Of a stretch of DNA of 64,000 nt, positions 1 to 64,000 are shown in pieces (position 1 is the stretch's first letter; every line of letters begins with the position of its first letter). The position numbers and the translations under genes were made by a program. The stretch lies in NCBI GenBank assembly GCA_946965045.2, contig OX337232.1, positions 3,844,001 through 3,908,000 of the forward strand. Reading direction: 5' to 3'. A model generated the notes under the pieces. That model saw only the letters and a program-made list of their open reading frames with translations. It was not told where the DNA came from and ran no database searches. Source of the DNA: Epithemia pelagica. Its lineage: Eukaryota > Protista > Bacillariophyta.

Positions 1-10
1 TCAGTCTTCC

Positions 11-355
11 ATGCACGTCTTCTTGTGCCAACGCTTACTTACACCTAAGTGGTTTAAACAATTGCACAAGGCTTGCGACCTTGTGCTGGAAATTCCAGCG
101 GGAACTTCGTTTTGGCCTGAAGGAAACTTTGAACCTCTAATCGTTGGTCTTGTTTTTCCGTTTATCAGGTCACAGCCATGGCAACTCCGAGGAACACCGA
201 AGATGTTCTCAATGGATTGGAAATTGCGCAAAATGTGGAAAGAAGATCCCGTGGGTGGACGGGATCTTCTGCGCAAATTTTGCGTACAGTGTTGGAAAAT
301 GCGCTCCATGTCGGAGCGCATGGTGTCCAGAGTGTTATTCTTTGAGCGACGATGA
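11..355 (+). CDS. C-terminal end of the pol ORF of a YR retrotransposon; ORF begins outside the window
   Basis: Open from the window edge (…QRLLTPKWFKQLHKACDLVLEIP…W….EPLIVGLVFPF…PWQLRG), overlaps the YR ORF in another frame, as pol does in DIRS-like elements. RT motifs are not in the window. Confidence 0.55.
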   Translation: MHVFLCQRLLTPKWFKQLHKACDLVLEIPAGTSFWPEGNFEPLIVGLVFPFIRSQPWQLRGTPKMFSMDWKLRKMWKEDPVGGRDLLRKFCVQCWKMRSMSERMVSRVLFFERR

Positions 356-1739
356 CCGGTTCTACGTCGCGTCGCGAAATACCATGGTAGAAGAATCGGA
401 TCAAGACCGTCTGGTGGCTGAGACTTGGAGGAGTCGCACCAGAGACCGTCGGGAGGATTTCAATCAAGCACGAGCCGGCGATCACATGGTCACGCCGTTC
501 GAATGCGATTTGTGCGTGTTCCGGAAACTGCGACAAGAGGAGCCGGACCCGCAAAACCTAAAAGACCAGTACCTTCTCACTTGCATAAGACGAATGAACT
601 TGGACGCCTTTTGGAGCAGGGCCACGAGTACGGTCATGCAGAACACGAGGAATGCAAAAACGATGATAGAAAAATCCAAGAAAGTTGGGATTCCATTCGG
701 ACCCTTCAGAAGCCCTGGTCCGTTCCCTAATTACGACCATTGTGGCTATCATGTGGCTTTCTTAATGCTGGATGCGTCGTTGGATCAAGGAAAGTATCAT
801 CGAGACAGAAAGCAGTTTGATACGATACGAAAATTTCGCTCTACCTATTCAAATCATGTGAGAGCAACGGCTTCTACGTTGGTAAACGGCCATCCGTTGG
901 TGCTTACAGACAACAATGGAAAGGCCTTTTCCCGAATGGGTCAGGATGAGAGCGGTTCGTTATGGTTCTCCAGATTTGTGGAAGGATGTCGACGTCGAAT
1001 GGGCCAAGATTGGCGACCTGATCAGGCTGTGACCAGTGAGCTAATGCTAGCCTTGTTGGGCTCAATCGAAGAGGAGATTGTGGAGAACCGAGAAGAACAC
1101 GACGCGTTCTTCCTTGTTCTTGCTGGCACCTTCTTCGCTACGTCGTACGTTTTGTCGTTACGAGGCCCGGAAGGTTTGCTGCTGGACTTGAATGCGCTTG
1201 TAAAGTACATGGATCTTTACAGGCAACGAAACTGTATTGTGGTTGGGTTGTGGGGGCAGTTCAAAGGAGAGCATATGGAACGCTCACACCTTTTGCCATG
1301 TTGCGACGAGACCAGCAGTGGAATAAAGATAAGACGATGGATAAATCGGGCAGTTTGCCTGTCCCAGGAGATGGGACGATGGTCGGGACCATTGATGCTC
1401 AATCGCAATGGGACCCCCATCACATCAAGAGCTTTGGACGACACTCTTCATCGTCACTTGATAAAAATCTTCGTTGAGCGGAGGGACCTTTTCCCGCTTG
1501 CTGCCATCAAAGACGAAGAGGACATTATATCAAGATACCCAGTCTTTCGATCCTTCCGGAGAGGATCAAATACGAGAGCCAAAGAAATTGGCGTTGCCAC
1601 TCCAGACGTTGATACAGTCAACCGCTGGAGAACGAAAGAAAATGCGGGCACAAACAAGCCAGGAGCCAGGATAGACCACATGTACGCCGATCTAAACTTG
1701 CTTGTGGGTCCGTTCTTGAGGTACACTTGGTCCATGTGA
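144..1739 (+). CDS. Tyrosine recombinase of DIRS/Ngaro-like retrotransposon
   Basis: Catalytic-type motifs LSLRGPEG (R), FRSFRRG (HxxR box with R for H), NRWR (W) and HMY (Y). N-terminal Cys clusters. First in-frame ATG is at 384. Confidence 0.85.
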   Translation: MVLFFRLSGHSHGNSEEHRRCSQWIGNCAKCGKKIPWVDGIFCANFAYSVGKCAPCRSAWCPECYSLSDDDRFYVASRNTMVEESDQDRLVAETWRSRTRDRREDFNQARAGDHMVTPFECDLCVFRKLRQEEPDPQNLKDQYLLTCIRRMNLDAFWSRATSTVMQNTRNAKTMIEKSKKVGIPFGPFRSPGPFPNYDHCGYHVAFLMLDASLDQGKYHRDRKQFDTIRKFRSTYSNHVRATASTLVNGHPLVLTDNNGKAFSRMGQDESGSLWFSRFVEGCRRRMGQDWRPDQAVTSELMLALLGSIEEEIVENREEHDAFFLVLAGTFFATSYVLSLRGPEGLLLDLNALVKYMDLYRQRNCIVVGLWGQFKGEHMERSHLLPCCDETSSGIKIRRWINRAVCLSQEMGRWSGPLMLNRNGTPITSRALDDTLHRHLIKIFVERRDLFPLAAIKDEEDIISRYPVFRSFRRGSNTRAKEIGVATPDVDTVNRWRTKENAGTNKPGARIDHMYADLNLLVGPFLRYTWSM

Positions 1740-1766
1740 TTGTCCAGTCGAGATTCTCGGTGGAGG

Positions 1767-2193
1767 GGGTTTTGGTTCCTACAAGTTGAGAGAAAGCCGA
1801 CATGGCAAGGCGTTTTCTCTTCTTGATTGTTGGTTTATGGGTTTGTTCCGTCACAGTCTGCTGTCCCTTGCCCCCTTTGCGATTGCATGGTGCTACCTGA
1901 TTGCGTTGGGGGAATCCAGGGGAACAAACAGGAGTCTCGACATGGTTCATCTACCCGTGGCTGATAAATTGGTACTCTTAGCTGGTTACGAAACACCGGC
2001 TTTGGCCCTGAGTGGAGAAGGTGTCGCCTTCCCCCCACAACACGATCTAATCATATGACTATGATCGCGAGAATCTAATTTGTTTAAGTTATTGAGTTGT
2101 TTCATCTGTTTGTTCGCCTTGTATCTTTGGCTGCGAGGGATCTCTTGCTTGGATGGCTACGAGGAAGGGCCCAAGGTCGGCGTGCGAGTGCCC
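1767..2193 (+). repeat. Split direct repeat B1
   Basis: Identical to 2732-3158 except ggtacTctta versus ggtacCctta. Confidence 0.95.
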
Positions 2194-2731
2194 TCAATGT
2201 ACATCAAAGTTTAAGCGGGATCAAGAAGTGGGATTGGACCACGTCACGGAGCCTGCGCATTGATTGTGAGCGAAGAGAGAGAGCCGGGCGAGATCCAGAG
2301 AACATCGCCGGCACACCGAACAGGAAATAGATGAGGCAGAACAGGCGTGCAATTCGGAAGTCGAATTTGAGAAAGTATGTGTATCACATCTACTGCGACA
2401 AAACACTTCCTGTTCAATCTCTGAAGTGCCATCATACAAGAACCAAGGACTCGGCCTTTCAAGAGACTTGGCTTATATGGAAACAGACAACAATGCGCCA
2501 AAATGAGGTCCCTAGTGGAGCGCAAGCATCGACCAGATCCACTAAGCCAAAGACGCAACAAACAAGACAAGAGGGAGAAGGAGCTCTCACTCTTTGGATT
2601 TCCTACGGTTCGACGGCGAAGGCTTGATCACCTTTGGCGTTGTTCTGAGTTCTCTGAAGAGCTGAATCTCCAACTTTCACAGGCACCAGCTAAGTGCCTA
2701 GTATTTTCTTTTTTCCCTCCCTTCCCGCCCT

Positions 2732-3158
2732 GGGTTTTGGTTCCTACAAGTTGAGAGAAAGCCGACATGGCAAGGCGTTTTCTCTTCTTGATTGTTGGTT
2801 TATGGGTTTGTTCCGTCACAGTCTGCTGTCCCTTGCCCCCTTTGCGATTGCATGGTGCTACCTGATTGCGTTGGGGGAATCCAGGGGAACAAACAGGAGT
2901 CTCGACATGGTTCATCTACCCGTGGCTGATAAATTGGTACCCTTAGCTGGTTACGAAACACCGGCTTTGGCCCTGAGTGGAGAAGGTGTCGCCTTCCCCC
3001 CACAACACGATCTAATCATATGACTATGATCGCGAGAATCTAATTTGTTTAAGTTATTGAGTTGTTTCATCTGTTTGTTCGCCTTGTATCTTTGGCTGCG
3101 AGGGATCTCTTGCTTGGATGGCTACGAGGAAGGGCCCAAGGTCGGCGTGCGAGTGCCC
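2732..3158 (+). repeat. Split direct repeat B2
   Basis: Second copy of B1; ends at gagtgccc. Confidence 0.95.
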
Positions 3159-3735
3159 CATGTTCGGCTAAGTAGGCTCAGTACAAAAGCTACGTAGAGT
3201 ACATAAAATCAGATAGTACACGTCACGCCGGAAATGGTCGGAATTTCAAAAAAATGCAAAAACGCTCGACAATGATGGCGAGATCCGGTGACGCCGTATG
3301 CATTCACCCATGCATCGCATAAACATCCAACCACCGTAAGTCCTTTGCCTTTACCTTTTAAATTGTTGTCTGAAATAACAGAAGATTTGCCAAGTTGGCT
3401 GAAAAGGTACGCTCATTTTTCTGCTGCGATGAAATCGAACGACCGCCCTAACTCATTCATTTTTCAAGGGTGCCTGAATCAAAGTGAAAGCGAAGTTGCT
3501 CTAGTAGTAAAGATTCTTATTGTAAAAGTGATTCAGGCAGGCTCAATTGTTCAGGAAGTTATTGCCATGGGGGTGATGACTTCCATCATTGTCGAGCGAT
3601 GGCTTCCAATTTGCATTGTTTCTCGTGGCAGCACGTTTTCAATTTGCGACTCGATGTGACCATCCGCCCCACTTCGTACACAGACGAAAATAGTACTACG
3701 TAGCTTTTGTACTGAGCCTACTTAGCCGAAGATGG
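3158..3735. mobile_element. Non-autonomous TIR element (MITE), ~578 bp
   Basis: ~40-bp TIRs: ccatgttcggctaagtaggctcagtacaaaagctacgtag at 3158 and its reverse complement ending 3735, one mismatch. No transposase ORF. No target-site duplication (TSD) visible. Confidence 0.85.
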
Positions 3736-4871
3736 ATCGGCTTACCCAGCCCTTAATATCATGGCGAATGTCCAAGCGTTGCCACAAGTAGGGTTTGCTT
3801 GTCATGGGATTGCGAGGCGTGCGCGTCGGAATCGTGGTAGAATGGGTGGATGACGATGAAAATGACAGGGATGCCAAGGGTTGATAATTGCGATACGTGT
3901 TTTGGAGTCGTTCTTGTTGTTGTTGTTGTTGTTGTTGTTGTATGGACAAGGGTGGTGGCGAGGGCATGGATGGACGATCCAGATGTTTTGGAGAAAACAC
4001 GGACCGACGAGGATCCTCCTCCTGGGACAACTCCCCCGTTGCGTTCCAGTCATTGTCGGTATCATCCTCATGGTCGGAAGTGGGTTGAATGAGGTTTTCT
4101 TGTTCCAACAAGGGTAACAAGAATTCGGGTTGCGGCAGGGACCAGACACAATAATACCCATTGGGTTTCTAGACGCAATGGACGGCTCGAAAAATATCTT
4201 GGACCTGTTTCGATCGTCCATCGTGTGATTGGCATAGGTACGAGACAAGGGATCCATCAATCCCTTGTCGAGTACAGCGTGAATGGAATTGTCTTGCGAA
4301 ATACTCCACAGTTGCACAATGTGCGGACTGCAATCGACTTGAATCACCGTTCGTCGTTGTCGTCCTTATCCAAGAGGGGGTTCGTGCGCGGCCGATTCCG
4401 TACCCAATCAGGAAATCCCACAACCCAAAATGACAATAGGAGCCTTCTTTTCTGGGCAAAATCTTTGGTGTCATTGTCGTCCTCCGTATTATACTCATCA
4501 TTATTGTCATCATCATCATTCTCGGTCAATCCCATGGTTTCCGCCAAGGTTGTAGAATGCACCGGTCGATGAGCATGCGACGAATCCAAGGTGGTGGATA
4601 CTGGCTGGTTATGGTCGTGATTCTTGTTTGGATCGTAATAGACTGCCGAAACAGAGGGCAAATGCTGCTGATGCTGCGACGCTACGAGCAACGAGGTGGA
4701 TACGGAAAGCGTCTTGTACTGATATTCCTGACGCATCGACCCATTCTTGCGGTCCAACTTGATCTGGTTGCTGCAACTTGGATCGATAGGAGAATCCCAA
4801 TACCGAGAGGTGCCGTAGGGGGCGCCGGCAAGAAAAGTTTCAAATTGGCTAACGACCAACGCTTTATGCAA
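3736..4871 (-). pseudogene. Frameshifted gene of unknown function truncated by the MITE
   Basis: Protein-like sequence is spread over three frames (4871-4344, 4347-~4140, ~4140-3722). The last frame reads into the MITE TIR and stops there (…GWVSRSIFG*). Confidence 0.4.
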
Positions 4872-53878: not shown

Positions 53879-55723
53879 TTACTGAATCTTATTTTCACTA
53901 GCGAGACTTTCCACATCATCGTTAAATTCATCTATTGGAATCTCGTCGTCGTCGTCGTCTTTGGTACGTTCCACCGCAGCCTTGGATGTCCCGTTTCCTC
54001 CCGTTTTACCCCGGAAGGAACGGCAGAAGAAGAGGAGGAGCAAGAGAGCGACAACCGGAACGAGAACGGCTACGACAACAATCCCGGGAGAATCCGGACC
54101 GGACGATGACTCATTCTCCGTACCGGCCACGGGAGCGTCACTTTCCAAGACGGGGGGAACATTGTCATTTTCTTGGTCCGCACTGAACTTGAGACCCGTA
54201 ATGGGATCCACATCGGAGTCCATATTCATCCAGTCGTGATCCCCCGCTTGAGTAATGGTGAGAACGTACAGGTCATTGTGCGTGGCCGCGTCGAGTTGAT
54301 CCCAGGCATTGGCAGTCAAAAAGACATCCCCATTGCTCGTTGGTGCAGTACCGACAGGAGGCCGCAATTCCATATTGACCAATTGATCGTGTCGCTGCGA
54401 ATCAATTTGTCGAATGAATTGCGTGGCTCCACTCCCCGTATCTAGTTTGAGAACCAGAATGTCCCGGGTGGGTGTCGTCGTGTAGGCACTGTTTCCGTTG
54501 CGCGCTGCCAGCAGTGGTTGGCGGGTGGCCGTCAATGGCCCTTGAATGGTCCCACCCACCAGGACTGCGTCCTCGTGGACGACGCAATGGGTCAATTCCA
54601 GCACGCCACCACCGCCGCCCACTCGAAATTGCCGTTTCCAGGCCGGATCTCGACCGTGCGTATCGATTTTGAGGACAAACCCGCTAAAGCCTCCGCTCTC
54701 CGTATTGGTAGGATCCAGCTCAAACTGTCCGGTCGTGGTACCCACGACGTAGGCCTTGTCACCCTGCAGGCAGACCCCCAGGACGACATCGTCCTTGTTT
54801 CGTTGCGATCGAATAATTGTGCCAATGTTGTTGTGCGTTTCACTGTCATAGTCGGTCAAATCGACCGTCCCTTGTTGGGCATTGACCCAGGTCATGTACC
54901 CGTTCCAGACGAGGCCATTGGACAAGGCACCGGCGCCGACCGTCATTCCGTTGCCCGTGGTAGAACCGAAAACGACCAATTCCCGGCCCTGGTTTGAGGG
55001 GACCAAGCCCATGCCCGTGACCAAACTCTTGCCACCGGTCGTATCCAGGACGAGTTGCCACTCAGTGGTCTTGGTCTGGCGATTGAACTTGAGAATCATG
55101 GGGGAATAGGTCTGGGCCTGCGGGCCGGTCAAGCCCGTGTAACGAGGATGAGAAAAGTGGGCCAGATACTCCTTGGTGGACTGCAGGAGGTTGCTCGGGT
55201 TGAGATTGTTGTGAAAGCCGTGGGTGGGATGGAGGGCCACATACACAAACTCTTGATTGTCCGGATCCGGTACGAGCAAGGCCGGAAAGTATCCCTGCGG
55301 CAAGGTCAGCAGGGGAGGCTGGACCAGAGTCATGTCGTAATTGTCGTAATTCATTTCGTACAGATATCCCTGTTCCTGGTCCGCCTCCATGGTGGTCAAG
55401 ACACCGTGCGCATGTCCCGAGTTGCCGCCGCTCGGGGCAGCGTCCAGGACCATGTCCAGACACAACGAGGACGGCATAAAGACTTGTCGATGCATCCCCA
55501 CGCCACGGTCCACCGACAGGTAACAGGATGGGGTTGTGGCTTTGGTATCGGCCCCCAACGAAAAGAGGCGAATTCCAGTCGGATCCAGGGCACTCCCGTA
55601 GACCACAATGGTGCCCAATTCCGAACCGGTTTCAAAGGCTTGTACCACCACCATCGACCGGGGGCCCCAAAGGAGGACGAGGACAGAACAGAGACTCCAG
55701 ATCACGGCCGCTGTCATTGTCAT
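53879..55723 (-). CDS. Type I membrane protein with signal peptide and beta-propeller-like ectodomain
   Basis: Hydrophobic N-terminus, repeats LVVFGSTTG / AYVVGTTTG / VLVGGTIQG / DILVLKLD, single C-terminal TM (GIVVVAVLVPVVALLLLLFF), acidic tail. Confidence 0.75.
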   Translation of the reverse strand: MTMTAAVIWSLCSVLVLLWGPRSMVVVQAFETGSELGTIVVYGSALDPTGIRLFSLGADTKATTPSCYLSVDRGVGMHRQVFMPSSLCLDMVLDAAPSGGNSGHAHGVLTTMEADQEQGYLYEMNYDNYDMTLVQPPLLTLPQGYFPALLVPDPDNQEFVYVALHPTHGFHNNLNPSNLLQSTKEYLAHFSHPRYTGLTGPQAQTYSPMILKFNRQTKTTEWQLVLDTTGGKSLVTGMGLVPSNQGRELVVFGSTTGNGMTVGAGALSNGLVWNGYMTWVNAQQGTVDLTDYDSETHNNIGTIIRSQRNKDDVVLGVCLQGDKAYVVGTTTGQFELDPTNTESGGFSGFVLKIDTHGRDPAWKRQFRVGGGGGVLELTHCVVHEDAVLVGGTIQGPLTATRQPLLAARNGNSAYTTTPTRDILVLKLDTGSGATQFIRQIDSQRHDQLVNMELRPPVGTAPTSNGDVFLTANAWDQLDAATHNDLYVLTITQAGDHDWMNMDSDVDPITGLKFSADQENDNVPPVLESDAPVAGTENESSSGPDSPGIVVVAVLVPVVALLLLLFFCRSFRGKTGGNGTSKAAVERTKDDDDDEIPIDEFNDDVESLASENKIQ

Positions 55724-55768
55724 GGTCCTACGGTACGTTGTTGCGAATGCCGAAATCGTAGGAGAGAC

Positions 55769-56130
55769 AGGGGCCTCAGAAATACATGGCAGATACATGA
55801 TTGGGTTAGAAATTTCACAAGACATAGACAAGACAGCAAAATACTTAACGAAAAATCAGACCAGACATGTCTTCTCTTACCTGTAGACATCGCGCGCCAC
55901 GCGCAAAAAGCCACGGAATCCTGCCGACTTCCCCACGAAAAAGATGAAAACGACGAGGAGTTCCGCTCCAACACGATTCCATGCCAATGAGACCGGTCGC
56001 GGTTACCGTGGCCCAGGACATGGACAATGGTGTCCATGTTTCTGGAAGGACAATGGACAGAGAGACGATGACTGGCAAGGAGGATGACTCTCCACCACCT
56101 CCAGCACCAAGGGTGGTGCTGCACAACCCT
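55769..56130 (+). mobile_element. 5' end of DNA-transposon-like element 1 (left terminus plus first ~88 codons)
   Basis: Collinear with 59983-60345 (aggggc…atgattgggttagaaa…atgtcttctcttacc.gtagacatcgcgcgccacgcgcaaaaagccacgg). Homology stops at aaccct 56130. Confidence 0.85.
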
Positions 56131-59100
56131 GTTAGGAAAATATAGGGGGATCTGGCAGAAGAAGAGGGGAAAAAAGAAGGAGAAAAAAAGAAGAAGAAAA
56201 GGAAAAAAGAAAAAGAAGGAAGAAATTATGGTAAGATTCCCTTCGTCGAGAACGTGCGATTGCCGCTATCAGAATGTGATCTAATTGGCTGCTGTCTTTG
56301 TCACTGTTTCTGCCCCTGTGTGCAATGTGTGGTGAGTGCGTGGTGGACCACGAAGCAGGAAGGAGGGGATTTGGCAGATCCCCACTACCACAGTACGTAT
56401 GAGTCCACGGTAAGTGCCTGAAGCGACTGTCTTTTGCTTAAGGTAAACAGTGTCATACTCACATATGCCCGATTGCTTCTCCAGCGAAGATATTAGCATT
56501 CACCACAAAAGAGTGCGTAGAAGTCTCGTACCACTGGTACAAGGTAAGCCTAGCTACGGCAGGATTTCGGAAGTGGTTGCTCATTTTCCTCTAGCTCATT
56601 ATTTCTTGGACGATGGTTTTCTCACTGCTGTTGTTGTTCGTATCGTTAATTCTTATTTTGCTATTTCTTGCGTGTACAGCACCATGGTACGTTGTCCCAG
56701 CCAGGTGCACTGATATTCCATTGATCGAATTGGTTGTTCTAACATTTTTCTTTTTTAAAATGGTGGTCGGTTACTCTGATGGTTTCGGCATGATTTGTCG
56801 TGTGGTGGAATGCCTCTACGGTTTCCCCGATTCCAATATTGGATGTTGCGAATGCAACAGTTCTGTATTGGCTGCATTTGAGCCGGGGCAACAGGCGGTT
56901 GATGTGGCTGATGAAGATTCCCAACGGCCGGGCACATGATCGTCGAGAGAAAAGCTGCTTGTTGCAAGAGCTGCTGTTGTACCTGGTAAATATTGGGCAT
57001 CGATGATGGTGCCAACGGTGGTTGTTGTTGTTGTGGTGGTGGCGGTAGTGGTGGAAGACTGGGCTGCTCCCTCATTGTTGGCTGTTTCTGGTTTGTGGTA
57101 ACTCGTGTTGTCGTTGTGCTTGTTGCGTTGATTTGGTTCTGTTTGACAGGCCGAGTCACTTGGATTGGTTCTTGTTCTTGAGCACTTGCCTCACACTCTT
57201 GCATCTCGCTGTCTTCTTCTTTTTCCTCCTCCTCTTCTTCTGGTTCTTTATCGTCTTCCATGTCCTGGTCGCTACCACTGTCCGAGTCTTCGCGGTTCGA
57301 TATTTCGTCGTCGTCGTCGTCGTCGTCACATTCGAGCATTGTCTCATTGTTTGTTGCGTCCTCTGTTGGTTCATTGCATTCGTTGCAGGGGCAGTGGTCA
57401 TTGCTGAGGAATGCCACTGGCCATGTTTGTTGGATCTGTTTTTGTATCGGCAGGTATTCGGAGAAGAATCGTTCTCCATTGTCAGGAGGTAAGTCTTCGA
57501 CCCAATCAAATGGTTTGCTCGCTCCACAACGAACTGCCAGTTTGTTGATGAAGGCAAGCTCCTGGTGATTGAAGTGACTAACGACACTTTCCCATGCTGC
57601 AGGCATTTTCGTGTTCCTCTCCTCCATTGAAGCCGAGGCTAAACGGATTTTGAGCCGGATTTGTTTGTTATATCGTGCCGTTCCACAGAGGTTGATGACA
57701 TCACTGAGATCCTCGTGCATTCCTCCATTTGCAAAGTGTGCGAGATTGTCATGCCATGATTCGAGCTTCGACTCGCCCCGGTAAGAAATCCACTCGCTGA
57801 GCCCATGTTTTGAATTTGGACCTGGCTTGATCTCACGATACATTTCACTTACAGGGAGTGGGTCCGAGAGATATTCTGCCTTTTTCTTGCAGTTCTCAAT
57901 GGCAAGGTGAGTGTCCATTGTAAACAGTGTTTGTTGCGTCCTTGGGTCGACTCGTCCTCTTGCTGCTCCAGATCCCTCTGACGCAGTTACCTTGTACTTG
58001 CATTTCCATTCTTCAAGCTTGGTGATGATTGTTTCCTTCCGCCTGATTCTTTTCCGTAAGTGCTTGCCGTATCGTGTCCGAAACTGCTTTGTCTGTCGCA
58101 TTTCAACAATCTCTTTGTCAGACAGTTTCTCACCTGTACTTGACATTGTGCCATCTTTCAGAGCCGTCACAAGTTTGTTGAAGTCGCGATCATCATAGTC
58201 GTACAATGCATCCAACAAATCTCTTATTGCGTGTCCGAAGTCGATATGGTTCTTTCGTAGTGTCTTGACGATCCTCTGAATGAAATGGAAGAGTCCTAAT
58301 CTTCCCTTGAGCTTCCTTCCATTCTTGTCACGCAACAATTCCTCCCAGAAGCTTTGCTTATGGGGCCAGGTGTCGGAATACATGATTGAGGGTTTAAAAT
58401 TTGGTCGCTTGGTGAGTTGAATTAATGCATGGGCGAAGTGTTTTGTCTCCGTGCTTCTAACCAGAATAGCCAATGCTACCTCGCCATGTTCATTGCAGAT
58501 ATCCCACAGTGCTTCGGCTTGCAGTCTCTTCGGGTAGTTCTTTACCACCTGGTGAGTGTGATCTTGTGCGAAGCATATCTGACACTGTACCGCTTGTATT
58601 TCGCGTGTGTGTCGCTCTTTATCGCTTGTTCGCCACGGATTCCACGTAGACATTGAGGCTTCAAGGTATGCCTTCCGAATTGTCTCGCCCAATGGTGGAA
58701 ACCGTGTCAGCCATTCGCCATCCTTCTTCGGGTAGTCCTGAGCCTTTTGGTGCGATGAATCACAGAAAGACAGGTAGCTTGTAAGCCTCTTCCTGTAATC
58801 TCGGTTGATTGCACTATATAACAACCGACTACATAGATCTCCATTCCCATGGGTAATCAGTAGTTCCTCAAAAACAGTTGTAGCAGTGAGGTCTAGATGT
58901 TGAGCACCTCTAGCCCACTTGGCCTCGACCGGGTACCATTTTTGAAAATGTGAGGGCAGCATATTGATCAGCGCCCCATCATTACCGGCGTGCGTGACCT
59001 TGCATTCCGGGCAGTAGTAGTTGGTGACCAGGGCGTAGTGGGGAGCACCACCAAGATTAAAAATCGGAAATAGGCTCTTGGTCTTGGAAAGGTTGGTCCT

Positions 59101-59982
59101 GTCTCTTTTTAGAGTACAGTCCCTACACTTTGGACACTTAATCCCCAACGCTTGAAATTCTTCCGGAAGGAACAGCCCCCAATCCACAATGTACAATTTC
59201 TGTCCTACTATTGAGTCCCAGAGGGCATTGTTGTTGTCGCGCACCTCCGGCACACAAAACTCCATGTTGCGCATGTACGCCTTAAGTGACGACAGGTCAC
59301 GCTTCTTCTCTAAGCAGTTTTCAGCGATCGTCTTGGCCAGCGCGTAAACCATCTTCGGACAGGAAATCGAGGTGTCCGGCGCGACTTCCTTGTACTTGTC
59401 GAGTACCGATCGCATGAATACATAGTCCGCCGACCCAACTGAAGACACGACTTTATTATTGATCAGTGATGTCGTGCGCGCAACACAGTTCTTTCTTCCT
59501 CCCCGTTTACTTGAAAGCTCGATATCCGCCGTCGTTATGGTTGTGGCTTCGTTTGAAGCCTCACATTCTGTTTTGTTGTTGAGTTGGAAGAAGAGGTTGA
59601 ATTCCTCTTGGCTCATGATGATGGGCTTGAAGGTCACCTCCCTTGTTGCCTCCTTCTTCAGCCTTTCTTCCTCTCTCAATGCTTCCACCAGATGATCAGG
59701 GATGCCCTTGGTCTTTGTGTTCTTGGTACAAAACTCGTGGTGAGATCGTTTGGGGGGCTTGATACCCAGACGCTTGGCAGAACAGATTCTGCAGTCCCTG
59801 TCTTCCTCAAATGCCTTCTTCTTCTCCAGGGTGAGTTGGTTCAGTCTTCTTGCTTCCTTCTTCTTCTTTGTTGACTTTGTTTGGTGTTGTGCTAACGATT
59901 TCGCCCGTTTTGTTTGGTTGTTTCGTCGTTGGCTTTGGCAACCCATGCCCTCCTGGTCACTGGGTTTCCTTTTGTATAGAGG
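56131..59982 (-). mobile_element. Inverted body and 3' tail of element 1
   Basis: Contains the transposase-like ORF and a 3' tail homologous to 63525-64000. Confidence 0.8.
56755..59946 (-). CDS. Putative DDE transposase (MULE/ISL3-like catalytic pattern, DUF6729-like Cys domain), 5'-truncated copy 1
   Basis: CxxC…HHxxC, CPKC…CxxC, FAQDHT (D), MYSDTW (D), RLGLFH, RGESKLESWH (E), C-terminal CC…W…PPH…C. Confidence 0.7.
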   Translation of the reverse strand: MGCQSQRRNNQTKRAKSLAQHQTKSTKKKKEARRLNQLTLEKKKAFEEDRDCRICSAKRLGIKPPKRSHHEFCTKNTKTKGIPDHLVEALREEERLKKEATREVTFKPIIMSQEEFNLFFQLNNKTECEASNEATTITTADIELSSKRGGRKNCVARTTSLINNKVVSSVGSADYVFMRSVLDKYKEVAPDTSISCPKMVYALAKTIAENCLEKKRDLSSLKAYMRNMEFCVPEVRDNNNALWDSIVGQKLYIVDWGLFLPEEFQALGIKCPKCRDCTLKRDRTNLSKTKSLFPIFNLGGAPHYALVTNYYCPECKVTHAGNDGALINMLPSHFQKWYPVEAKWARGAQHLDLTATTVFEELLITHGNGDLCSRLLYSAINRDYRKRLTSYLSFCDSSHQKAQDYPKKDGEWLTRFPPLGETIRKAYLEASMSTWNPWRTSDKERHTREIQAVQCQICFAQDHTHQVVKNYPKRLQAEALWDICNEHGEVALAILVRSTETKHFAHALIQLTKRPNFKPSIMYSDTWPHKQSFWEELLRDKNGRKLKGRLGLFHFIQRIVKTLRKNHIDFGHAIRDLLDALYDYDDRDFNKLVTALKDGTMSSTGEKLSDKEIVEMRQTKQFRTRYGKHLRKRIRRKETIITKLEEWKCKYKVTASEGSGAARGRVDPRTQQTLFTMDTHLAIENCKKKAEYLSDPLPVSEMYREIKPGPNSKHGLSEWISYRGESKLESWHDNLAHFANGGMHEDLSDVINLCGTARYNKQIRLKIRLASASMEERNTKMPAAWESVVSHFNHQELAFINKLAVRCGASKPFDWVEDLPPDNGERFFSEYLPIQKQIQQTWPVAFLSNDHCPCNECNEPTEDATNNETMLECDDDDDDDEISNREDSDSGSDQDMEDDKEPEEEEEEKEEDSEMQECEASAQEQEPIQVTRPVKQNQINATSTTTTRVTTNQKQPTMREQPSLPPLPPPPQQQQPPLAPSSMPNIYQVQQQLLQQAAFLSTIMCPAVGNLHQPHQPPVAPAQMQPIQNCCIRNIQYWNRGNRRGIPPHDKSCRNHQSNRPPF

Positions 59983-62900
59983 AGGGGCTCACGAAATAGA
60001 AGGCAGAAATATGATTGGGTTAGAAAACTCACAAGACATAGACAAGACATCAAAATACTTAACGAAAACTCACACAAGACATGTCTTCTCTTACCAGTAG
60101 ACATCGCGCGCCACGCGCAAAAAGCCACGGAATCTTGCCGACTTCCCCACGAAAACAGCCGAAACGACAGGGATTTCGTCTCCAACACGATTCCGTGCCA
60201 ATGAGGCCGGTCGCGGTTGCCGTGCCCCAGGACATGGACAATGGTGTCGATGTTTCTGGAGCGACAATGGACCCAACCACGATGACTGTCCCTGAGGAGA
60301 ATGACTCTCCTCCACCACCACCAGCACCCTTGGTGGTGAACCCATACAAAAAGCTCAGCAAGGAGCAAGAGATGGGTGGGCAGAGTCAACGACGAAACAA
60401 CCAAACAAAAAGGGCAAAGTCGTTAGCACAACAGAGAAGCAACAAGAAGAGGAAGCAACAAGAGGCAAAGCAGTTGAGGCAGCTCACGCTTGAGAAGAAA
60501 AAGGCCTTTGAGCCAGACAGGGACTGCACCATCTGCAGTTCCAAAAGGCTTGGGACCAAGCCTCCCAAGCGCCCCCATCACGTCTTCTGCCCGAAGAACA
60601 CAAAGACCAGGGGCATACCAGACCACTTGGTAGAGGCCATGAAGGAGGAGGAACGACTGAAGAAAGAGGCCAACAAGGAAGTGACTTACCATCCAATCAT
60701 CATGAGGCAAGAAGATTTCAACCTCTTCTTTCGTCTCAACAATAAACCTGTCTCGGAAGCTTCAAATGAAGCAACGACCGTGACAGAGGACGATTTGAAA
60801 CTTTCCAGGGTTCGGAAGGGGAAGCGCAACTGTATTGCGCGCACGGACTGCCTGATCAATAATCAGGTGACGTCCGCCGTTGGGTCCGATGAGTATGTAT
60901 TTATGCAATCGGTACTGGCTAAATACAAGGAGATAGAACAAGACGAGTCGATCACGTGTCCGAAAACAATGTACGCGCTTGCCAAGACTATCGCCGAAAC
61001 TTGTTTGGAACGGAAGCGCGACGTGCGGTCACTTAAGCCGTTCATGCGAGACATGTGTTTGACTGTACCCGACGTGCGAAACAACAATAATGCCCTGTGG
61101 GACTCAATTGTAGGGCGACGTTTGTACATTGTTGACTGGGAGCTGTTTATGCCGGTGGAGTTTCAGAAAATTGGGCTTAAGTGTCCAAAGTGTAGCAACT
61201 GTACACTACAACGCGAGCGGACCAACCTTTCCAAGAGCAAAAGTCTATTCCCCATTTTTGGTCTTGATGGCGCACCGTCTTACGCCCTTGTCACGCACTA
61301 CCATTGCAAGGAGTGCAATACCACGCATGCCGGCAACGACGGAGCACTTCTCAATTCGCTGCCTCCACATTTTGCGAAATGGTATCCGGTCGAAGCAAAG
61401 TGGGCTCGAGGTGCCCAGCACTTCGACATTACAACAACAACAGTGTTGGAGGAGGAGATGCTTACCTATGGCAATGGTGACCACTGTAGTGGACTATTGT
61501 ATGCTGCAATCAACAGGGATTATAGGAATAGAATAACTAACTATTACTCCTTCTGCGATGCAACACATCAGCAAGGGCAAGAGTACCCAGCGAAAGATGG
61601 AGAGTGGCTCACCAGGTATCCTCCTCTTGGTGAGACAATCAGACAGGCCTACCACGAGGCATCAAGATCCAGACTCAATCCCTGGAGAACAAGTGACTAT
61701 GAGAGGCACACCAGGGAAATCCAAGCAGTGGGCTGCCAAACAAGTTTTGCCCAAGACCACACCTTCCAAGCAGTCAAGAACTATCCCAAGAGGCTCAAGG
61801 CAGAAGCTGTATGGGATGCTGCCAATGAAGTAGGCGAGATTGCATGTGCAATCTTGGTTCCAAACTTGGAAACCAAGACCTTCTCCCATGCTGCCCAACA
61901 ACTCTGCAGCCGTGGAAATTTTAACCCGAGCGTCATCTATTCCGACACATTCCCCCACAAGAGCGATTATTGGGTTGGATTGTTGGGTGAAGATGTAGTC
62001 CCAAGACTGGGACTCTTTCATTTCCTCCAGCGAATTATAAAGACCCTGCGCCATAAACACATGGACTTTGGTGACGCGTTGCGCGAATTGTTGGATTGCA
62101 TCTACGAGTATCACGATGGTGACTTCCATAAAGTCATCACGGCCCTGAAGAATGGCACCCTTGGAGGCAAGAAATGTAATGACAAGCAAATAGCAGAAAT
62201 GAGACAGACCAAGGTTTTTCGCGAAAGATACGGCAAGTACTTACGGAAAAGCATCCGCGCGTTCCAAACAATCGTGATGCGCCTGGAGGAGTGGAAGATA
62301 AAATATAAAGTGAGAAGTAGTAGTGACAGTGGGCCACCGGCACGAGGAAGGCTCGATCACAAGACACAACAACCATTGTTCACACAAGATACTCACTCAG
62401 CAATCGAAAACTGTAAAAAAAAGGCAGAGTTTCTCGCAGATCCGATTCCAATGGAAGACATGTATCGTGAGATCAAACCACACCCAAAATCAAGCCATCA
62501 ATTGTCCGAATGGGTCTCTTACCGAGGGGAATCCAAATTGGAGTCATGGCACAACAACTTGGCCCATTTCAGTAATGGGGGCACAAATGAAAAACTCTCG
62601 GACGACTTGAACTTGTGCGGAACGGCGCGGTACAACCGTCAGATTCGACACAAGCTGCGCTTTGTGTCGAAGACAACGGAACAACGCAACAAGAAAATGC
62701 CTGCGGCGTGGGAAACAGTGGTGAGTCATTGGAACCACCAGCAACTTGCCTTTATCAACAAGTTGGCCGTTCGATGCGGCGCATCCAAGTTGTTCGATGA
62801 CGTCGAGCACTTACCGCAAGACAATGGTGAACGCTTTTTTTCTGAGTACTTACAAGTTTATGAGCAACTCAACAAGGTCTGGAACATCTCGGTCCAACAG

Positions 62901-64000
62901 CATGACTTCTGTCCCTGTGAGAAATGTGAGGCTCAGCGCAATATGCAAGATGAAGAAACAATGCAAACAAGTGAGACACTGGAACAACAAGATACAGAAC
63001 AATCACGAGAAAATGAAAAAGAGCAACAAGTTGAGGAAACAGAAGAGCATCAAGACGAAGCAAACCAAGAAGATGACGATGATCCAATGTTGAGTGATGA
63101 GGAGGAAGAGCTGCCGCCACCACCAGCTCCAACAGTGCATCTGTCTTCTCCAACACGACCACAACGAGCACCACCACAAACACAACAGCAACCTGCTCCC
63201 AAATCGCAACCAAGAACAGCAATACAACCGGCCCCCAGACCAATCACCATGCCACAACCACAAATGCCATCACTTCCACCATTGCTTCCGCCAAATACGC
63301 CGCTTGCTAGTGTTCATCACTTTCAGCAACAGCTGCTGCAGCAAGCGGCGTATTACTCGTCGTACCTTGGTTGCCAACCGATCCATCAACAACCAACACA
63401 TCCACAACCGACTCAAAATTGTTGCATCCGCAATATTCAGTATTGGCAGAGGCCCAATCGTCGGGGCATCCCACCCCATGACAAATCTTGTTCCAACCAT
63501 CCCAGTAATGCATCGTACCCTTAAAACACAACAACAACATCGGTTAGAGAGCAGCAAAAATCAACACAGCATCAACAGCCAACAGTCGCGACTTACCATG
63601 GAGGCCAGACACTTTAAGACAAAGATTCAAGAGATATAACAACAACAACGACGACAACAACAACAGTAGTGAGAAAACCATCGATCAGAAAATAATGAAC
63701 TAACAAAAACTGTGCAAAACTTCTCGTCCATGCCGTAGCTATGATTGCGTGATATACTGGAAACAATGTATGCCAATATCTTCGCACAGGCAATACAATC
63801 AGAGATCAAAGGCATATGTGAGGCTGACGATGTTTTGTATAGGTAAAAGACACACGGTGTCAGCACTTACCGTAGCCAGATACGTAGAACGACCGTAGGG
63901 AACTGCCAAATCCCCCTCCACCGGGACATTGGAGCAACACGTAGTCACCACACATCCCACACAGACCAGAAGCAGTGACAAATGGATCAACCAATGAGAT
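59983..64000 (+). mobile_element. DNA-transposon-like element 2 (right end beyond the window)
   Basis: Left terminus aggggctc at 59983 matches element 1 at 55769. Tail homology to element 1 runs to the last base of the window. Confidence 0.8.
60081..63524 (+). CDS. Putative DDE transposase, intact copy 2 (1147 aa)
   Basis: Same motifs as copy 1 (FAQDHTF, IYSDTF, RLGLFH, RGESKLESWH). No stops or frameshifts. Confidence 0.75.
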   Translation: MSSLTSRHRAPRAKSHGILPTSPRKQPKRQGFRLQHDSVPMRPVAVAVPQDMDNGVDVSGATMDPTTMTVPEENDSPPPPPAPLVVNPYKKLSKEQEMGGQSQRRNNQTKRAKSLAQQRSNKKRKQQEAKQLRQLTLEKKKAFEPDRDCTICSSKRLGTKPPKRPHHVFCPKNTKTRGIPDHLVEAMKEEERLKKEANKEVTYHPIIMRQEDFNLFFRLNNKPVSEASNEATTVTEDDLKLSRVRKGKRNCIARTDCLINNQVTSAVGSDEYVFMQSVLAKYKEIEQDESITCPKTMYALAKTIAETCLERKRDVRSLKPFMRDMCLTVPDVRNNNNALWDSIVGRRLYIVDWELFMPVEFQKIGLKCPKCSNCTLQRERTNLSKSKSLFPIFGLDGAPSYALVTHYHCKECNTTHAGNDGALLNSLPPHFAKWYPVEAKWARGAQHFDITTTTVLEEEMLTYGNGDHCSGLLYAAINRDYRNRITNYYSFCDATHQQGQEYPAKDGEWLTRYPPLGETIRQAYHEASRSRLNPWRTSDYERHTREIQAVGCQTSFAQDHTFQAVKNYPKRLKAEAVWDAANEVGEIACAILVPNLETKTFSHAAQQLCSRGNFNPSVIYSDTFPHKSDYWVGLLGEDVVPRLGLFHFLQRIIKTLRHKHMDFGDALRELLDCIYEYHDGDFHKVITALKNGTLGGKKCNDKQIAEMRQTKVFRERYGKYLRKSIRAFQTIVMRLEEWKIKYKVRSSSDSGPPARGRLDHKTQQPLFTQDTHSAIENCKKKAEFLADPIPMEDMYREIKPHPKSSHQLSEWVSYRGESKLESWHNNLAHFSNGGTNEKLSDDLNLCGTARYNRQIRHKLRFVSKTTEQRNKKMPAAWETVVSHWNHQQLAFINKLAVRCGASKLFDDVEHLPQDNGERFFSEYLQVYEQLNKVWNISVQQHDFCPCEKCEAQRNMQDEETMQTSETLEQQDTEQSRENEKEQQVEETEEHQDEANQEDDDDPMLSDEEEELPPPPAPTVHLSSPTRPQRAPPQTQQQPAPKSQPRTAIQPAPRPITMPQPQMPSLPPLLPPNTPLASVHHFQQQLLQQAAYYSSYLGCQPIHQQPTHPQPTQNCCIRNIQYWQRPNRRGIPPHDKSCSNHPSNASYP

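Follow-up and report, generated by a model that had tools for sequence, protein, structure and literature searches.

A reciprocal inversion that splits one of two neighbouring transposons in the diatom Epithemia pelagica, and a possible role for their transposase

How did one transposon in the diatom Epithemia pelagica come to lie as two pieces of opposite orientation beside an intact relative? The window in which this is seen comprises 64,000 nt (C5:3844001-3908000, i.e. contig OX337232.1 of assembly GCA_946965045.2, which amounts to 60.5 Mb in 23 contigs), and the two elements concerned, herein E1 and E2 and members of a little-studied family, are located 2.2 kb from the contig end. Alignment with intact copies of the family demonstrates that a single copy, E1, was split by a clean, two-break reciprocal inversion, with approximately nine-tenths of its length being flipped. 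As to cause, we favour, at a probability of about one-half, an aberrant and non-canonical break and rejoining that was made or guided by the transposase of the family. An earlier, sequence-only reading of the window had proposed that two tandem copies underwent alternative (reversed-ends) transposition into E1, inverting 56131-59982 with a possible 3-bp target-site duplication (TSD) of CCT, which would be direct evidence for an active cut-and-paste transposon.

Structure of the element pair

The locus is composed of the following features, given as window positions.

55766-55769, plus strand: gaca, the probable left TSD of E1, being the 4 nt that precede GGGG; its right counterpart, aaca (reverse complement, 56130-56133), agrees at 3/4 positions
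55770-56129, plus strand: E1 nt 1-360, comprising the left end GGGGCCTCAG..., the 5′ untranslated region and the first 49.7 codons; 100 % identity over 360 nt to units of an array on contig C11
56130-56136, minus strand: the old right flank of E1, moved with the inverted block; cct (C plus 2 variable nt) followed by aaca (right TSD copy)
56137-59977, minus strand: E1 nt 361-4201, inverted; 99.2 % identity over 3,841 nt to the C11 unit nearest to the 5′ piece
56755-59946, minus strand: intact open reading frame (ORF) of 1,063 aa in the inverted E1 body, starting at the conserved MGCQSQRR
59978-59979, plus strand: ag, two host bases between the TSDs of E1 and E2; this junction was read directly, with breakpoint 2 at 59977/59978
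59980-59983, plus strand: agga, left TSD of E2; AGGA is found again after the E2 3′ end plus tga, at window-equivalent 64147-64150 (locus L031)
59984-64000, continuing to window-equivalent 64143, plus strand: E2, 4,160 bp; 97.8–99.8 % identity over ~4.16 kb to six other full-length single copies
60081-63524, plus strand: E2 ORF of 1,147 aa

When the 5′ piece of E1 (55770-56129) is joined to the reverse complement of 56137-59977, the product is a 4,201-bp element that aligns over positions 1-4201 to one unit of the C11 array at 99.26 % identity, and the sequence un-inverted in silico is collinear with intact copies as a single high-scoring segment pair. This same C11 unit is the nearest relative of both pieces (100 % for the 5′ piece and 99.2 % for the body), and the remaining relatives rank in identical order for the two. 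Un-inversion also regains an ORF of 1,123 aa, in keeping with the 1,121–1,124 aa of intact copies; in the present arrangement the ORF starts of the two halves face one another, 135 bp apart. Restoring 56130-59977 to its former orientation places E1 upstream of E2 and on the same strand. In these respects the sequence-only reading was well founded: the plus-strand piece and the minus-strand body are parts of one element, which formerly lay adjacent to E2 in the same orientation until the inversion split it. The origin of the 5′ fragment from a third copy, which that reading had named as fatal to its proposal, is at odds with the nearest relative being shared by both pieces.

It is scarcely credible that a solo 5′ fragment and an unrelated, 5′-truncated inverted copy simply came to lie side by side. 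Truncated members of the family do exist, as in the case of a C6 copy in which similarity ends after nt 408, but the two pieces described here complement one another to the base (1-360 and 361-4201) and share both nearest relative and ranking, with the chance of such a matching truncation being ~1 in 4,200. Diagnostic substitutions that would assign the two E1 pieces to different sublineages were not found.

Breakpoint 1 falls between E1 nt 360 and 361 (56129/56130), with no base duplicated. The 5′ piece stops at ...CACAACCC, a sequence likewise present in intact copies, and the site reads GCACAACCC|ATACAAAAGG (AACCC|ATAC) in 24/24 intact E1-type copies retrieved, such that nothing has been duplicated or lost. 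It follows the second base of codon 50 (CC|A), and is thus not codon-exact. Breakpoint 2, at 59977/59978, falls within the 13-nt gap between E1 and E2 (cct aaca | ag agga), and is positioned 7 nt outside the E1 3′ end and 6 nt outside the E2 5′ end (GGGG at 59984). If the conserved C/T that follows the 3′ end is counted as the last base of E1, the break is 6 nt from both element ends. The inverted block is therefore 56130-59977, a length of 3,848 bp that corresponds to E1 nt 361-4201 plus 7 flanking bases. Each of the new joints is blunt and lacks microhomology, a TSD or any tip sequence. Not a single base has been added or removed, and all 13 spacer bases are kept upon reconstruction, divided 7+6 between the two joints. 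Microhomology-mediated inversion via CCT/AGG was considered, and was set aside in view of the true break site in intact copies.

These positions revise several details of the sequence-only reading. The CCT by which the two E1 pieces had seemed to be joined is not shared, as intact copies read AACCC|ATAC and both the t at 56130 and the agg at 59980-59982 are old flank; the appearance of sharing arose because E1 had been compared with the diverged E2. The right breakpoint does lie between the E1 3′ end and the E2 5′ end, a few bases before E2, but is not flush with the E2 terminus, being 6 nt before its first base. Likewise, position 56131 is not the E1 3′ terminus, which begins at 56137 (the reverse complement of ...CCCCCTATATTTT), since 56130-56136 is the reverse complement of cct aaca. 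An inversion of roughly the proposed interval is thus upheld, with its exact bounds moved from 56131-59982 to 56130-59977.

The 7 nt at 56130-56136 (tgtt agg when read on the plus strand) are arranged in the way seen on the right of all copies, namely a 3′ end, then Y-N-N, then a 4-bp TSD. The un-inverted order is gaca | E1 | c-ct-aaca-ag-agga | E2 | t-ga-agga, and from this arrangement the state before the inversion is read as two ordinary insertions, the TSDs of which lay 2 bp apart in a purine-rich stretch. E2 nested within an inverted E1 was discarded as an explanation, since the DNA to the right of E2 does not derive from E1. A search of the same genome with the flanks of the locus returned no empty site; the left flank is unique, as are the first 390 nt of the right flank, with the remainder being repeat. 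A minus-strand gene in the ORF list (53882-55723) has its ATG ~46 bp from the left end of E1, which lies upstream of it, such that the locus is in the promoter of this gene.

That the inversion is an artefact of assembly, and not real in cells, appears improbable. Both elements are multi-copy, with copies 98–100 % identical, the contig end is just 2.2 kb away, and the inversion is known solely from the assembly. Against this, each of the novel joints is unique, and the rearrangement is reciprocal and base-exact with every flanking base accounted for. Repeat collapse or chimeric reads are not normally base-exact and reciprocal, and the assembly is highly contiguous (23 contigs for 60.5 Mb).

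Comparison with reversed-ends transposition

Reversed-ends transposition, as described for the maize Ac/fAc elements, leaves transposon tips flush at the joints, loses the DNA between the elements and creates a fresh TSD (10.1101/2021.03.08.434479), with Ac inversions displaying 8-bp TSDs precisely at the termini (10.1101/2021.03.08.434479). Applied to this locus, it would have the E1 3′ tip and the E2 5′ tip excised together and inserted into E1 with duplication of CCT. The topology is appropriate. Before the event the two elements lay close together in direct orientation, with a 3′ end facing a 5′ end, as in the model of Zhang and Peterson; the inversion extends from the insertion point as far as the E1 3′ side, i.e. 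from an element end to a nearby site; and one element is within the inversion whilst the other is just outside it. In contrast to Ac/fAc, however, the tips of E1 and E2 are off the joints, with 7 and 6 nt of old flank left on the respective ends, meaning that the inter-element DNA was not lost. CCT is not duplicated at the break, and no new TSD was made: the TSD of this family is 4 bp, and the AGG that had been taken as a trace of a 3-bp duplication is part of the perfect AGGA...AGGA duplication belonging to E2 itself. As flush tips, spacer loss and a fresh TSD, each of which the mechanism demands, are all absent, canonical reversed-ends transposition is not supported, and we regard it as very improbable.

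Without these marks, the inversion is not direct evidence for active cut-and-paste movement. The activity of the family is, from the copies compared, better evidenced by its many near-identical members with TSDs. In the wider sense that the family is young and of DDE type, the sequence-only reading is supported.

Copies, ends and target-site duplications of the family

Genome-wide, there are ~15 E2-type and ~15 E1-type 5′ ends, with 3′ ends in matching numbers. The two types encode proteins that are 64 % identical, and represent diverged subfamilies of one family. The first 418 bp of E2 are 100 % identical to a copy on C13, and, with 15 near-identical 5′ ends in one subfamily, the family looks to have been recently active.

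The element begins with GGGGC(C)TCA... at the left and finishes with ...CCCCCTATA(AAGT or TTTT) at the right, after which a C/T (Y) is conserved. These ends are asymmetric, with GGGG being common to both ends in E1 and E2 alike, and no clear terminal inverted repeat (TIR) is present in either element. A subterminal GGCAGA at the left is mirrored in inverted orientation by TCTGCC at the right in E1 only, with E2 having no right-end copy.

The search for further copies with defined ends and TSDs that had been suggested for this locus was productive. In 9/17 copies, including E2 (AGGA on both sides), the 4-bp sequence that precedes the left end is repeated 3 nt past ...AAGT/...TTTT, as compared to a chance expectation of 0.07, and there are essentially no matches at other offsets. 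The sequence that follows the TSD usually begins GGG, AGG or GGGTT; amongst the sites of insertion are tcca^gggttt, ctca^gggttt and tcat^gggtgg. Three bases separate the 3′ end from the TSD. A C/T invariably comes first, and the other two vary between near-identical copies and match neither flank; amongst the six single copies in which a TSD is present, there is none where both variable nucleotides agree with the left flank. Examples of these three bases, past ...AAAGT or ...ATTTT, are found at window positions 56134-56136 (reverse complement) and L031 5145-5147.

Three sources for the variable bases were considered and set aside. Hairpin P-nucleotides would be palindromic to the end, which these bases are not; target bases −7 to −5, as a template, do not match them; and the last bases of a donor TSD would not explain a first base that is always C/T, given that TSD position 2 is not.

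A TSD is entirely missing from around half of the single copies that are full-length (L034, L035, L036, L040, L041, L044 and the last unit of L047). Recombination, or additional aberrant events, may have swapped the flanks of such copies. Two of them, L034 and L036, occupy almost matching positions in two copies of a different repeat. For the flanks of copy L032, no paralogous empty site was found in a search of the same genome. The E1-type copy on C6 (C6:1555500-1561500), in which element similarity ends after nt 408, has its 3′ end 10.4 kb away on the same strand, and is probably a nested insertion rather than an inversion.

Head-to-tail arrays

Members of the family also form head-to-tail arrays, as follows.

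C13:1705000-1714999 (L046): array of 5 units; junction spacer gcaaaa
C5:2494500-2504499 (L047): array; junction spacer ggcctc
C11:3249952-3283522 (L048, L049, L021-L024): array; junction spacer gtaaaa
C8 (L045): array

For the three arrays with a readable left flank, the junction spacer of 6 nt, measured from the right end (including the C/T) to the next left end, is identical to the last 6 nt of the left flank of that array (3/3). From these junctions, the arrays are read as having arisen when a right end was joined to a position 6 nt beyond a left end. An origin by unequal exchange, with the TSDs of ordinary insertions as partners, is not a suitable explanation, as the spacer equals the left flank, and the variable nucleotides of single copies do not match the flank.

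The C11 array is a higher-order repeat, in which a block of two units is present twice. Each block consists of an intact unit and a unit that spans 12.6 kb, in which ~8.4 kb of additional DNA follows ~nt 1110 of the element. We infer from this layout that arrays also grow by segmental duplication, with the two-unit C11 block having been duplicated whole. Every unit of the C13 array (4,948 bp as compared to 4,160 bp) holds the same ~785-bp insert at element position ~2,520, and since all units share it, this array expanded after the insertion.

A putative transposase-guided origin of the inversion

Whilst the structure of the inversion is evident from the alignments, the involvement of an enzyme is inferred from where the breaks fall. 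In the favoured sequence of events, two copies from diverged subfamilies would first have lain head-to-tail, 13 nt apart (c-ct-aaca-ag-agga). A break between E1 nt 360 and 361 and a second in the inter-element gap would then have been followed by crosswise rejoining of the ends without gain or loss, with both breaks being made or guided, non-canonically, by the transposase of the family. The facing ends of two elements would thereby have been put into a nearby target, which is the topology that the sequence-only reading proposed, but the chemistry would differ from its scheme: one blunt cut in the spacer, a blunt cut in the target and no TSD.

The breaks do not look random, because the break in the gap is at the 6/6 point and that in E1 is at a target-like motif. 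The 6-nt offset of the former is the same distance at which a right end is joined to the left flank in three arrays of the family, and it also agrees with the 6–8 bp at which ISCth4 attacks flanking DNA of the recipient end (PMC7780238). On the opposite strand, the E1 break reads GTAT^GGGTTG, which resembles the NNNN^GGGTT of insertion sites, and it leaves an end of ...CCC-3′ that is comparable to the ...CCCC-3′ of the true left end. A break placed at random in E1 would coincide with the 5′ edge of GGG at P = 0.021, or with that of GGGTT at P = 0.0012.

Several points weigh against a transposase-guided event. The target motif was recognised post hoc from few insertions, and neither junction contains a transposon tip or TSD, so there is no chemical tie between the transposase and the event. 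The 6+6 symmetry is in part due to the chance lie of the two insertions (2+4 nt on each side). Moreover, a single strand transfer of the IS256 type would not in itself give a reciprocal inversion, for which both strands must exchange. The TSD of E1 agrees at 3/4 positions only (gaca as compared to aaca). Finally, E2 may have arrived either before or after the inversion, and all figures derive from the assembly.

The foremost competing explanation, which we consider less probable but would take seriously, is an inversion independent of transposase, in which two chance double-strand breaks were joined crosswise and their positions are coincidental. Joints that are blunt, and devoid of microhomology, TSD or tip sequence, are as such a process would leave them, and the locus is subtelomeric, a type of region that is often rearranged (the right-flank repeat is also present at the ends of C18 and C19, and the contig end is 2.2 kb away). 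Chance breaks, however, would need the second to fall within a 13-nt gap at its 6/6 point and the first at a GGGTT-like motif (P ~0.001–0.02), and zero loss at both joints is a possible, but not the usual, outcome of joining two breaks by end joining.

The encoded protein

Pfam comparisons of the protein return CxC5 only, at a sub-threshold level (E = 0.037; 14.6 bits as compared to a cut-off of 26.9). DUF6729 matches 4/23 relatives (best E = 7.8e-6), and a protein atlas likewise indicates DUF6729 clusters. No match was obtained to the Mutator/MULE/IS256 profiles of Pfam at E ≤ 0.1 for the query or E ≤ 0.05 for 23 aligned sequences, nor to the KDZ catalytic domain in Pfam, and a sequence search of the PDB gave nothing useful. 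The best named relative is from the diatom Seminavis robusta, and unnamed homologues are numerous in diatom and mat metagenomes.

An AlphaFold (AF2) model of residues 330-930 has a pLDDT of 92.8, and its top match amongst solved structures is the transposase of ISCth4, of the IS256 family (Foldseek E = 4e-4; VIA Z = 13.1 over 269 residues), with retroviral integrases and Hermes next (Z ~9). Amongst 23–53 relatives, there is no variation at D559 or D622, and conservation at E817/E821 is 90 % or higher. The acidic residues of the model are placed in strand 226-232, after strand 289-292, and in helix 487-500 (following helix). By predicted fold and residue conservation, the protein is a DDE (RNase H-fold) transposase.

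Relationship to known transposon systems

In ISCth4, the 3′-OH of one end is joined to flanking DNA 6–8 bp outside the other end, generating abutted ends with a flank-derived spacer (PMC7780238). The family described here resembles such copy-out/paste-in elements of the IS256 family, together with tandem IS dimers, in its closest solved fold and in its arrays, three of which consist of a right end, 6 nt of left flank and a left end; abutted ends with a short, flank-copied spacer are thus seen in 3/3 arrays. It differs in having a eukaryotic host and a protein of ~1,100 aa with a Cys-cluster N-terminal region, in a TSD of 4 rather than 8 bp, in lacking clear TIRs and in having no Mutator/IS256 Pfam match. 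By the usual standard for the IS256/Mutator superfamily, a TSD of 8–10 bp together with TIRs, it would not be included. No circle has been seen for this family, and the diatom arrays are chromosomal. Amongst metagenome contigs of relatives, 0/80 have terminal overlap or conserved end motifs, but pairs in this set are mostly the same locus assembled twice, and the set has no bearing on circular forms or on the ends and TSDs of other species.

A more speculative, and to our minds doubtful, proposal is that this is a eukaryotic DDE transposon with asymmetric, IS256-like chemistry, in which one end, through its 3′-OH, becomes linked to the flank 6 nt outside the other. If true, this would explain the arrays with flank-copied 6-nt spacers, the asymmetric ends and the inversion. 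The last of these could have been a misfire, in which a wrong-strand ...CCC-3′ pseudo-end was joined at the point 6 nt outside that is common to the E1 right end and the E2 left end.

With regard to other eukaryotic elements, the KDZ families (Kyakuja, Dileera and Zisupton) have TSDs of 7–8 bp, and Kyakuja is without TIRs (PMC12730594). Similarities include a large DDE-type transposase with cysteine clusters of CxC type (a weak CxC5 match, with DUF6729 in relatives) and, as in Kyakuja, no TIRs. In contrast to KDZ, there is no Pfam match to the KDZ catalytic domain, and the 4-bp TSD comes after 2 variable nt. Neither a KDZ domain nor CxC5/CxC6 above the Pfam threshold, which would together define membership, was found.

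Transposon-linked inversions are well known, and taken alone the inversion is a modest result. Of greater consequence is the family itself, which is abundant in diatoms and mat metagenomes, has a catalytic core for which there is no usable Pfam model, and displays unusual features in its asymmetric ends, its 4-bp TSD after two variable bases and its tandem arrays with a flank-copied spacer. If the 6-nt rule reflects the chemistry of the enzyme, the family would represent, in eukaryotes, a counterpart to the copy-out/paste-in elements of bacteria, and the inversion a natural record of enzyme misfire.

Sequences to the right of E2

To the right of E2 the order is tga, agga and then aggg.... No telomere repeat was seen at the contig end near E2. 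A stretch of 280 bp in this region (within C5:3908534-3909299; L031:5535-5814) matches the very ends of contigs C18 and C19 at 96 % identity, a distribution that identifies it as a subtelomeric repeat. Next to it comes a repeat of ~490 bp (L031:5814-6300), of which there are at least 35 copies genome-wide. A 91-bp inverted repeat is also located to the right of E2, with its arms at L031 5815-5904 and 7123-7213.

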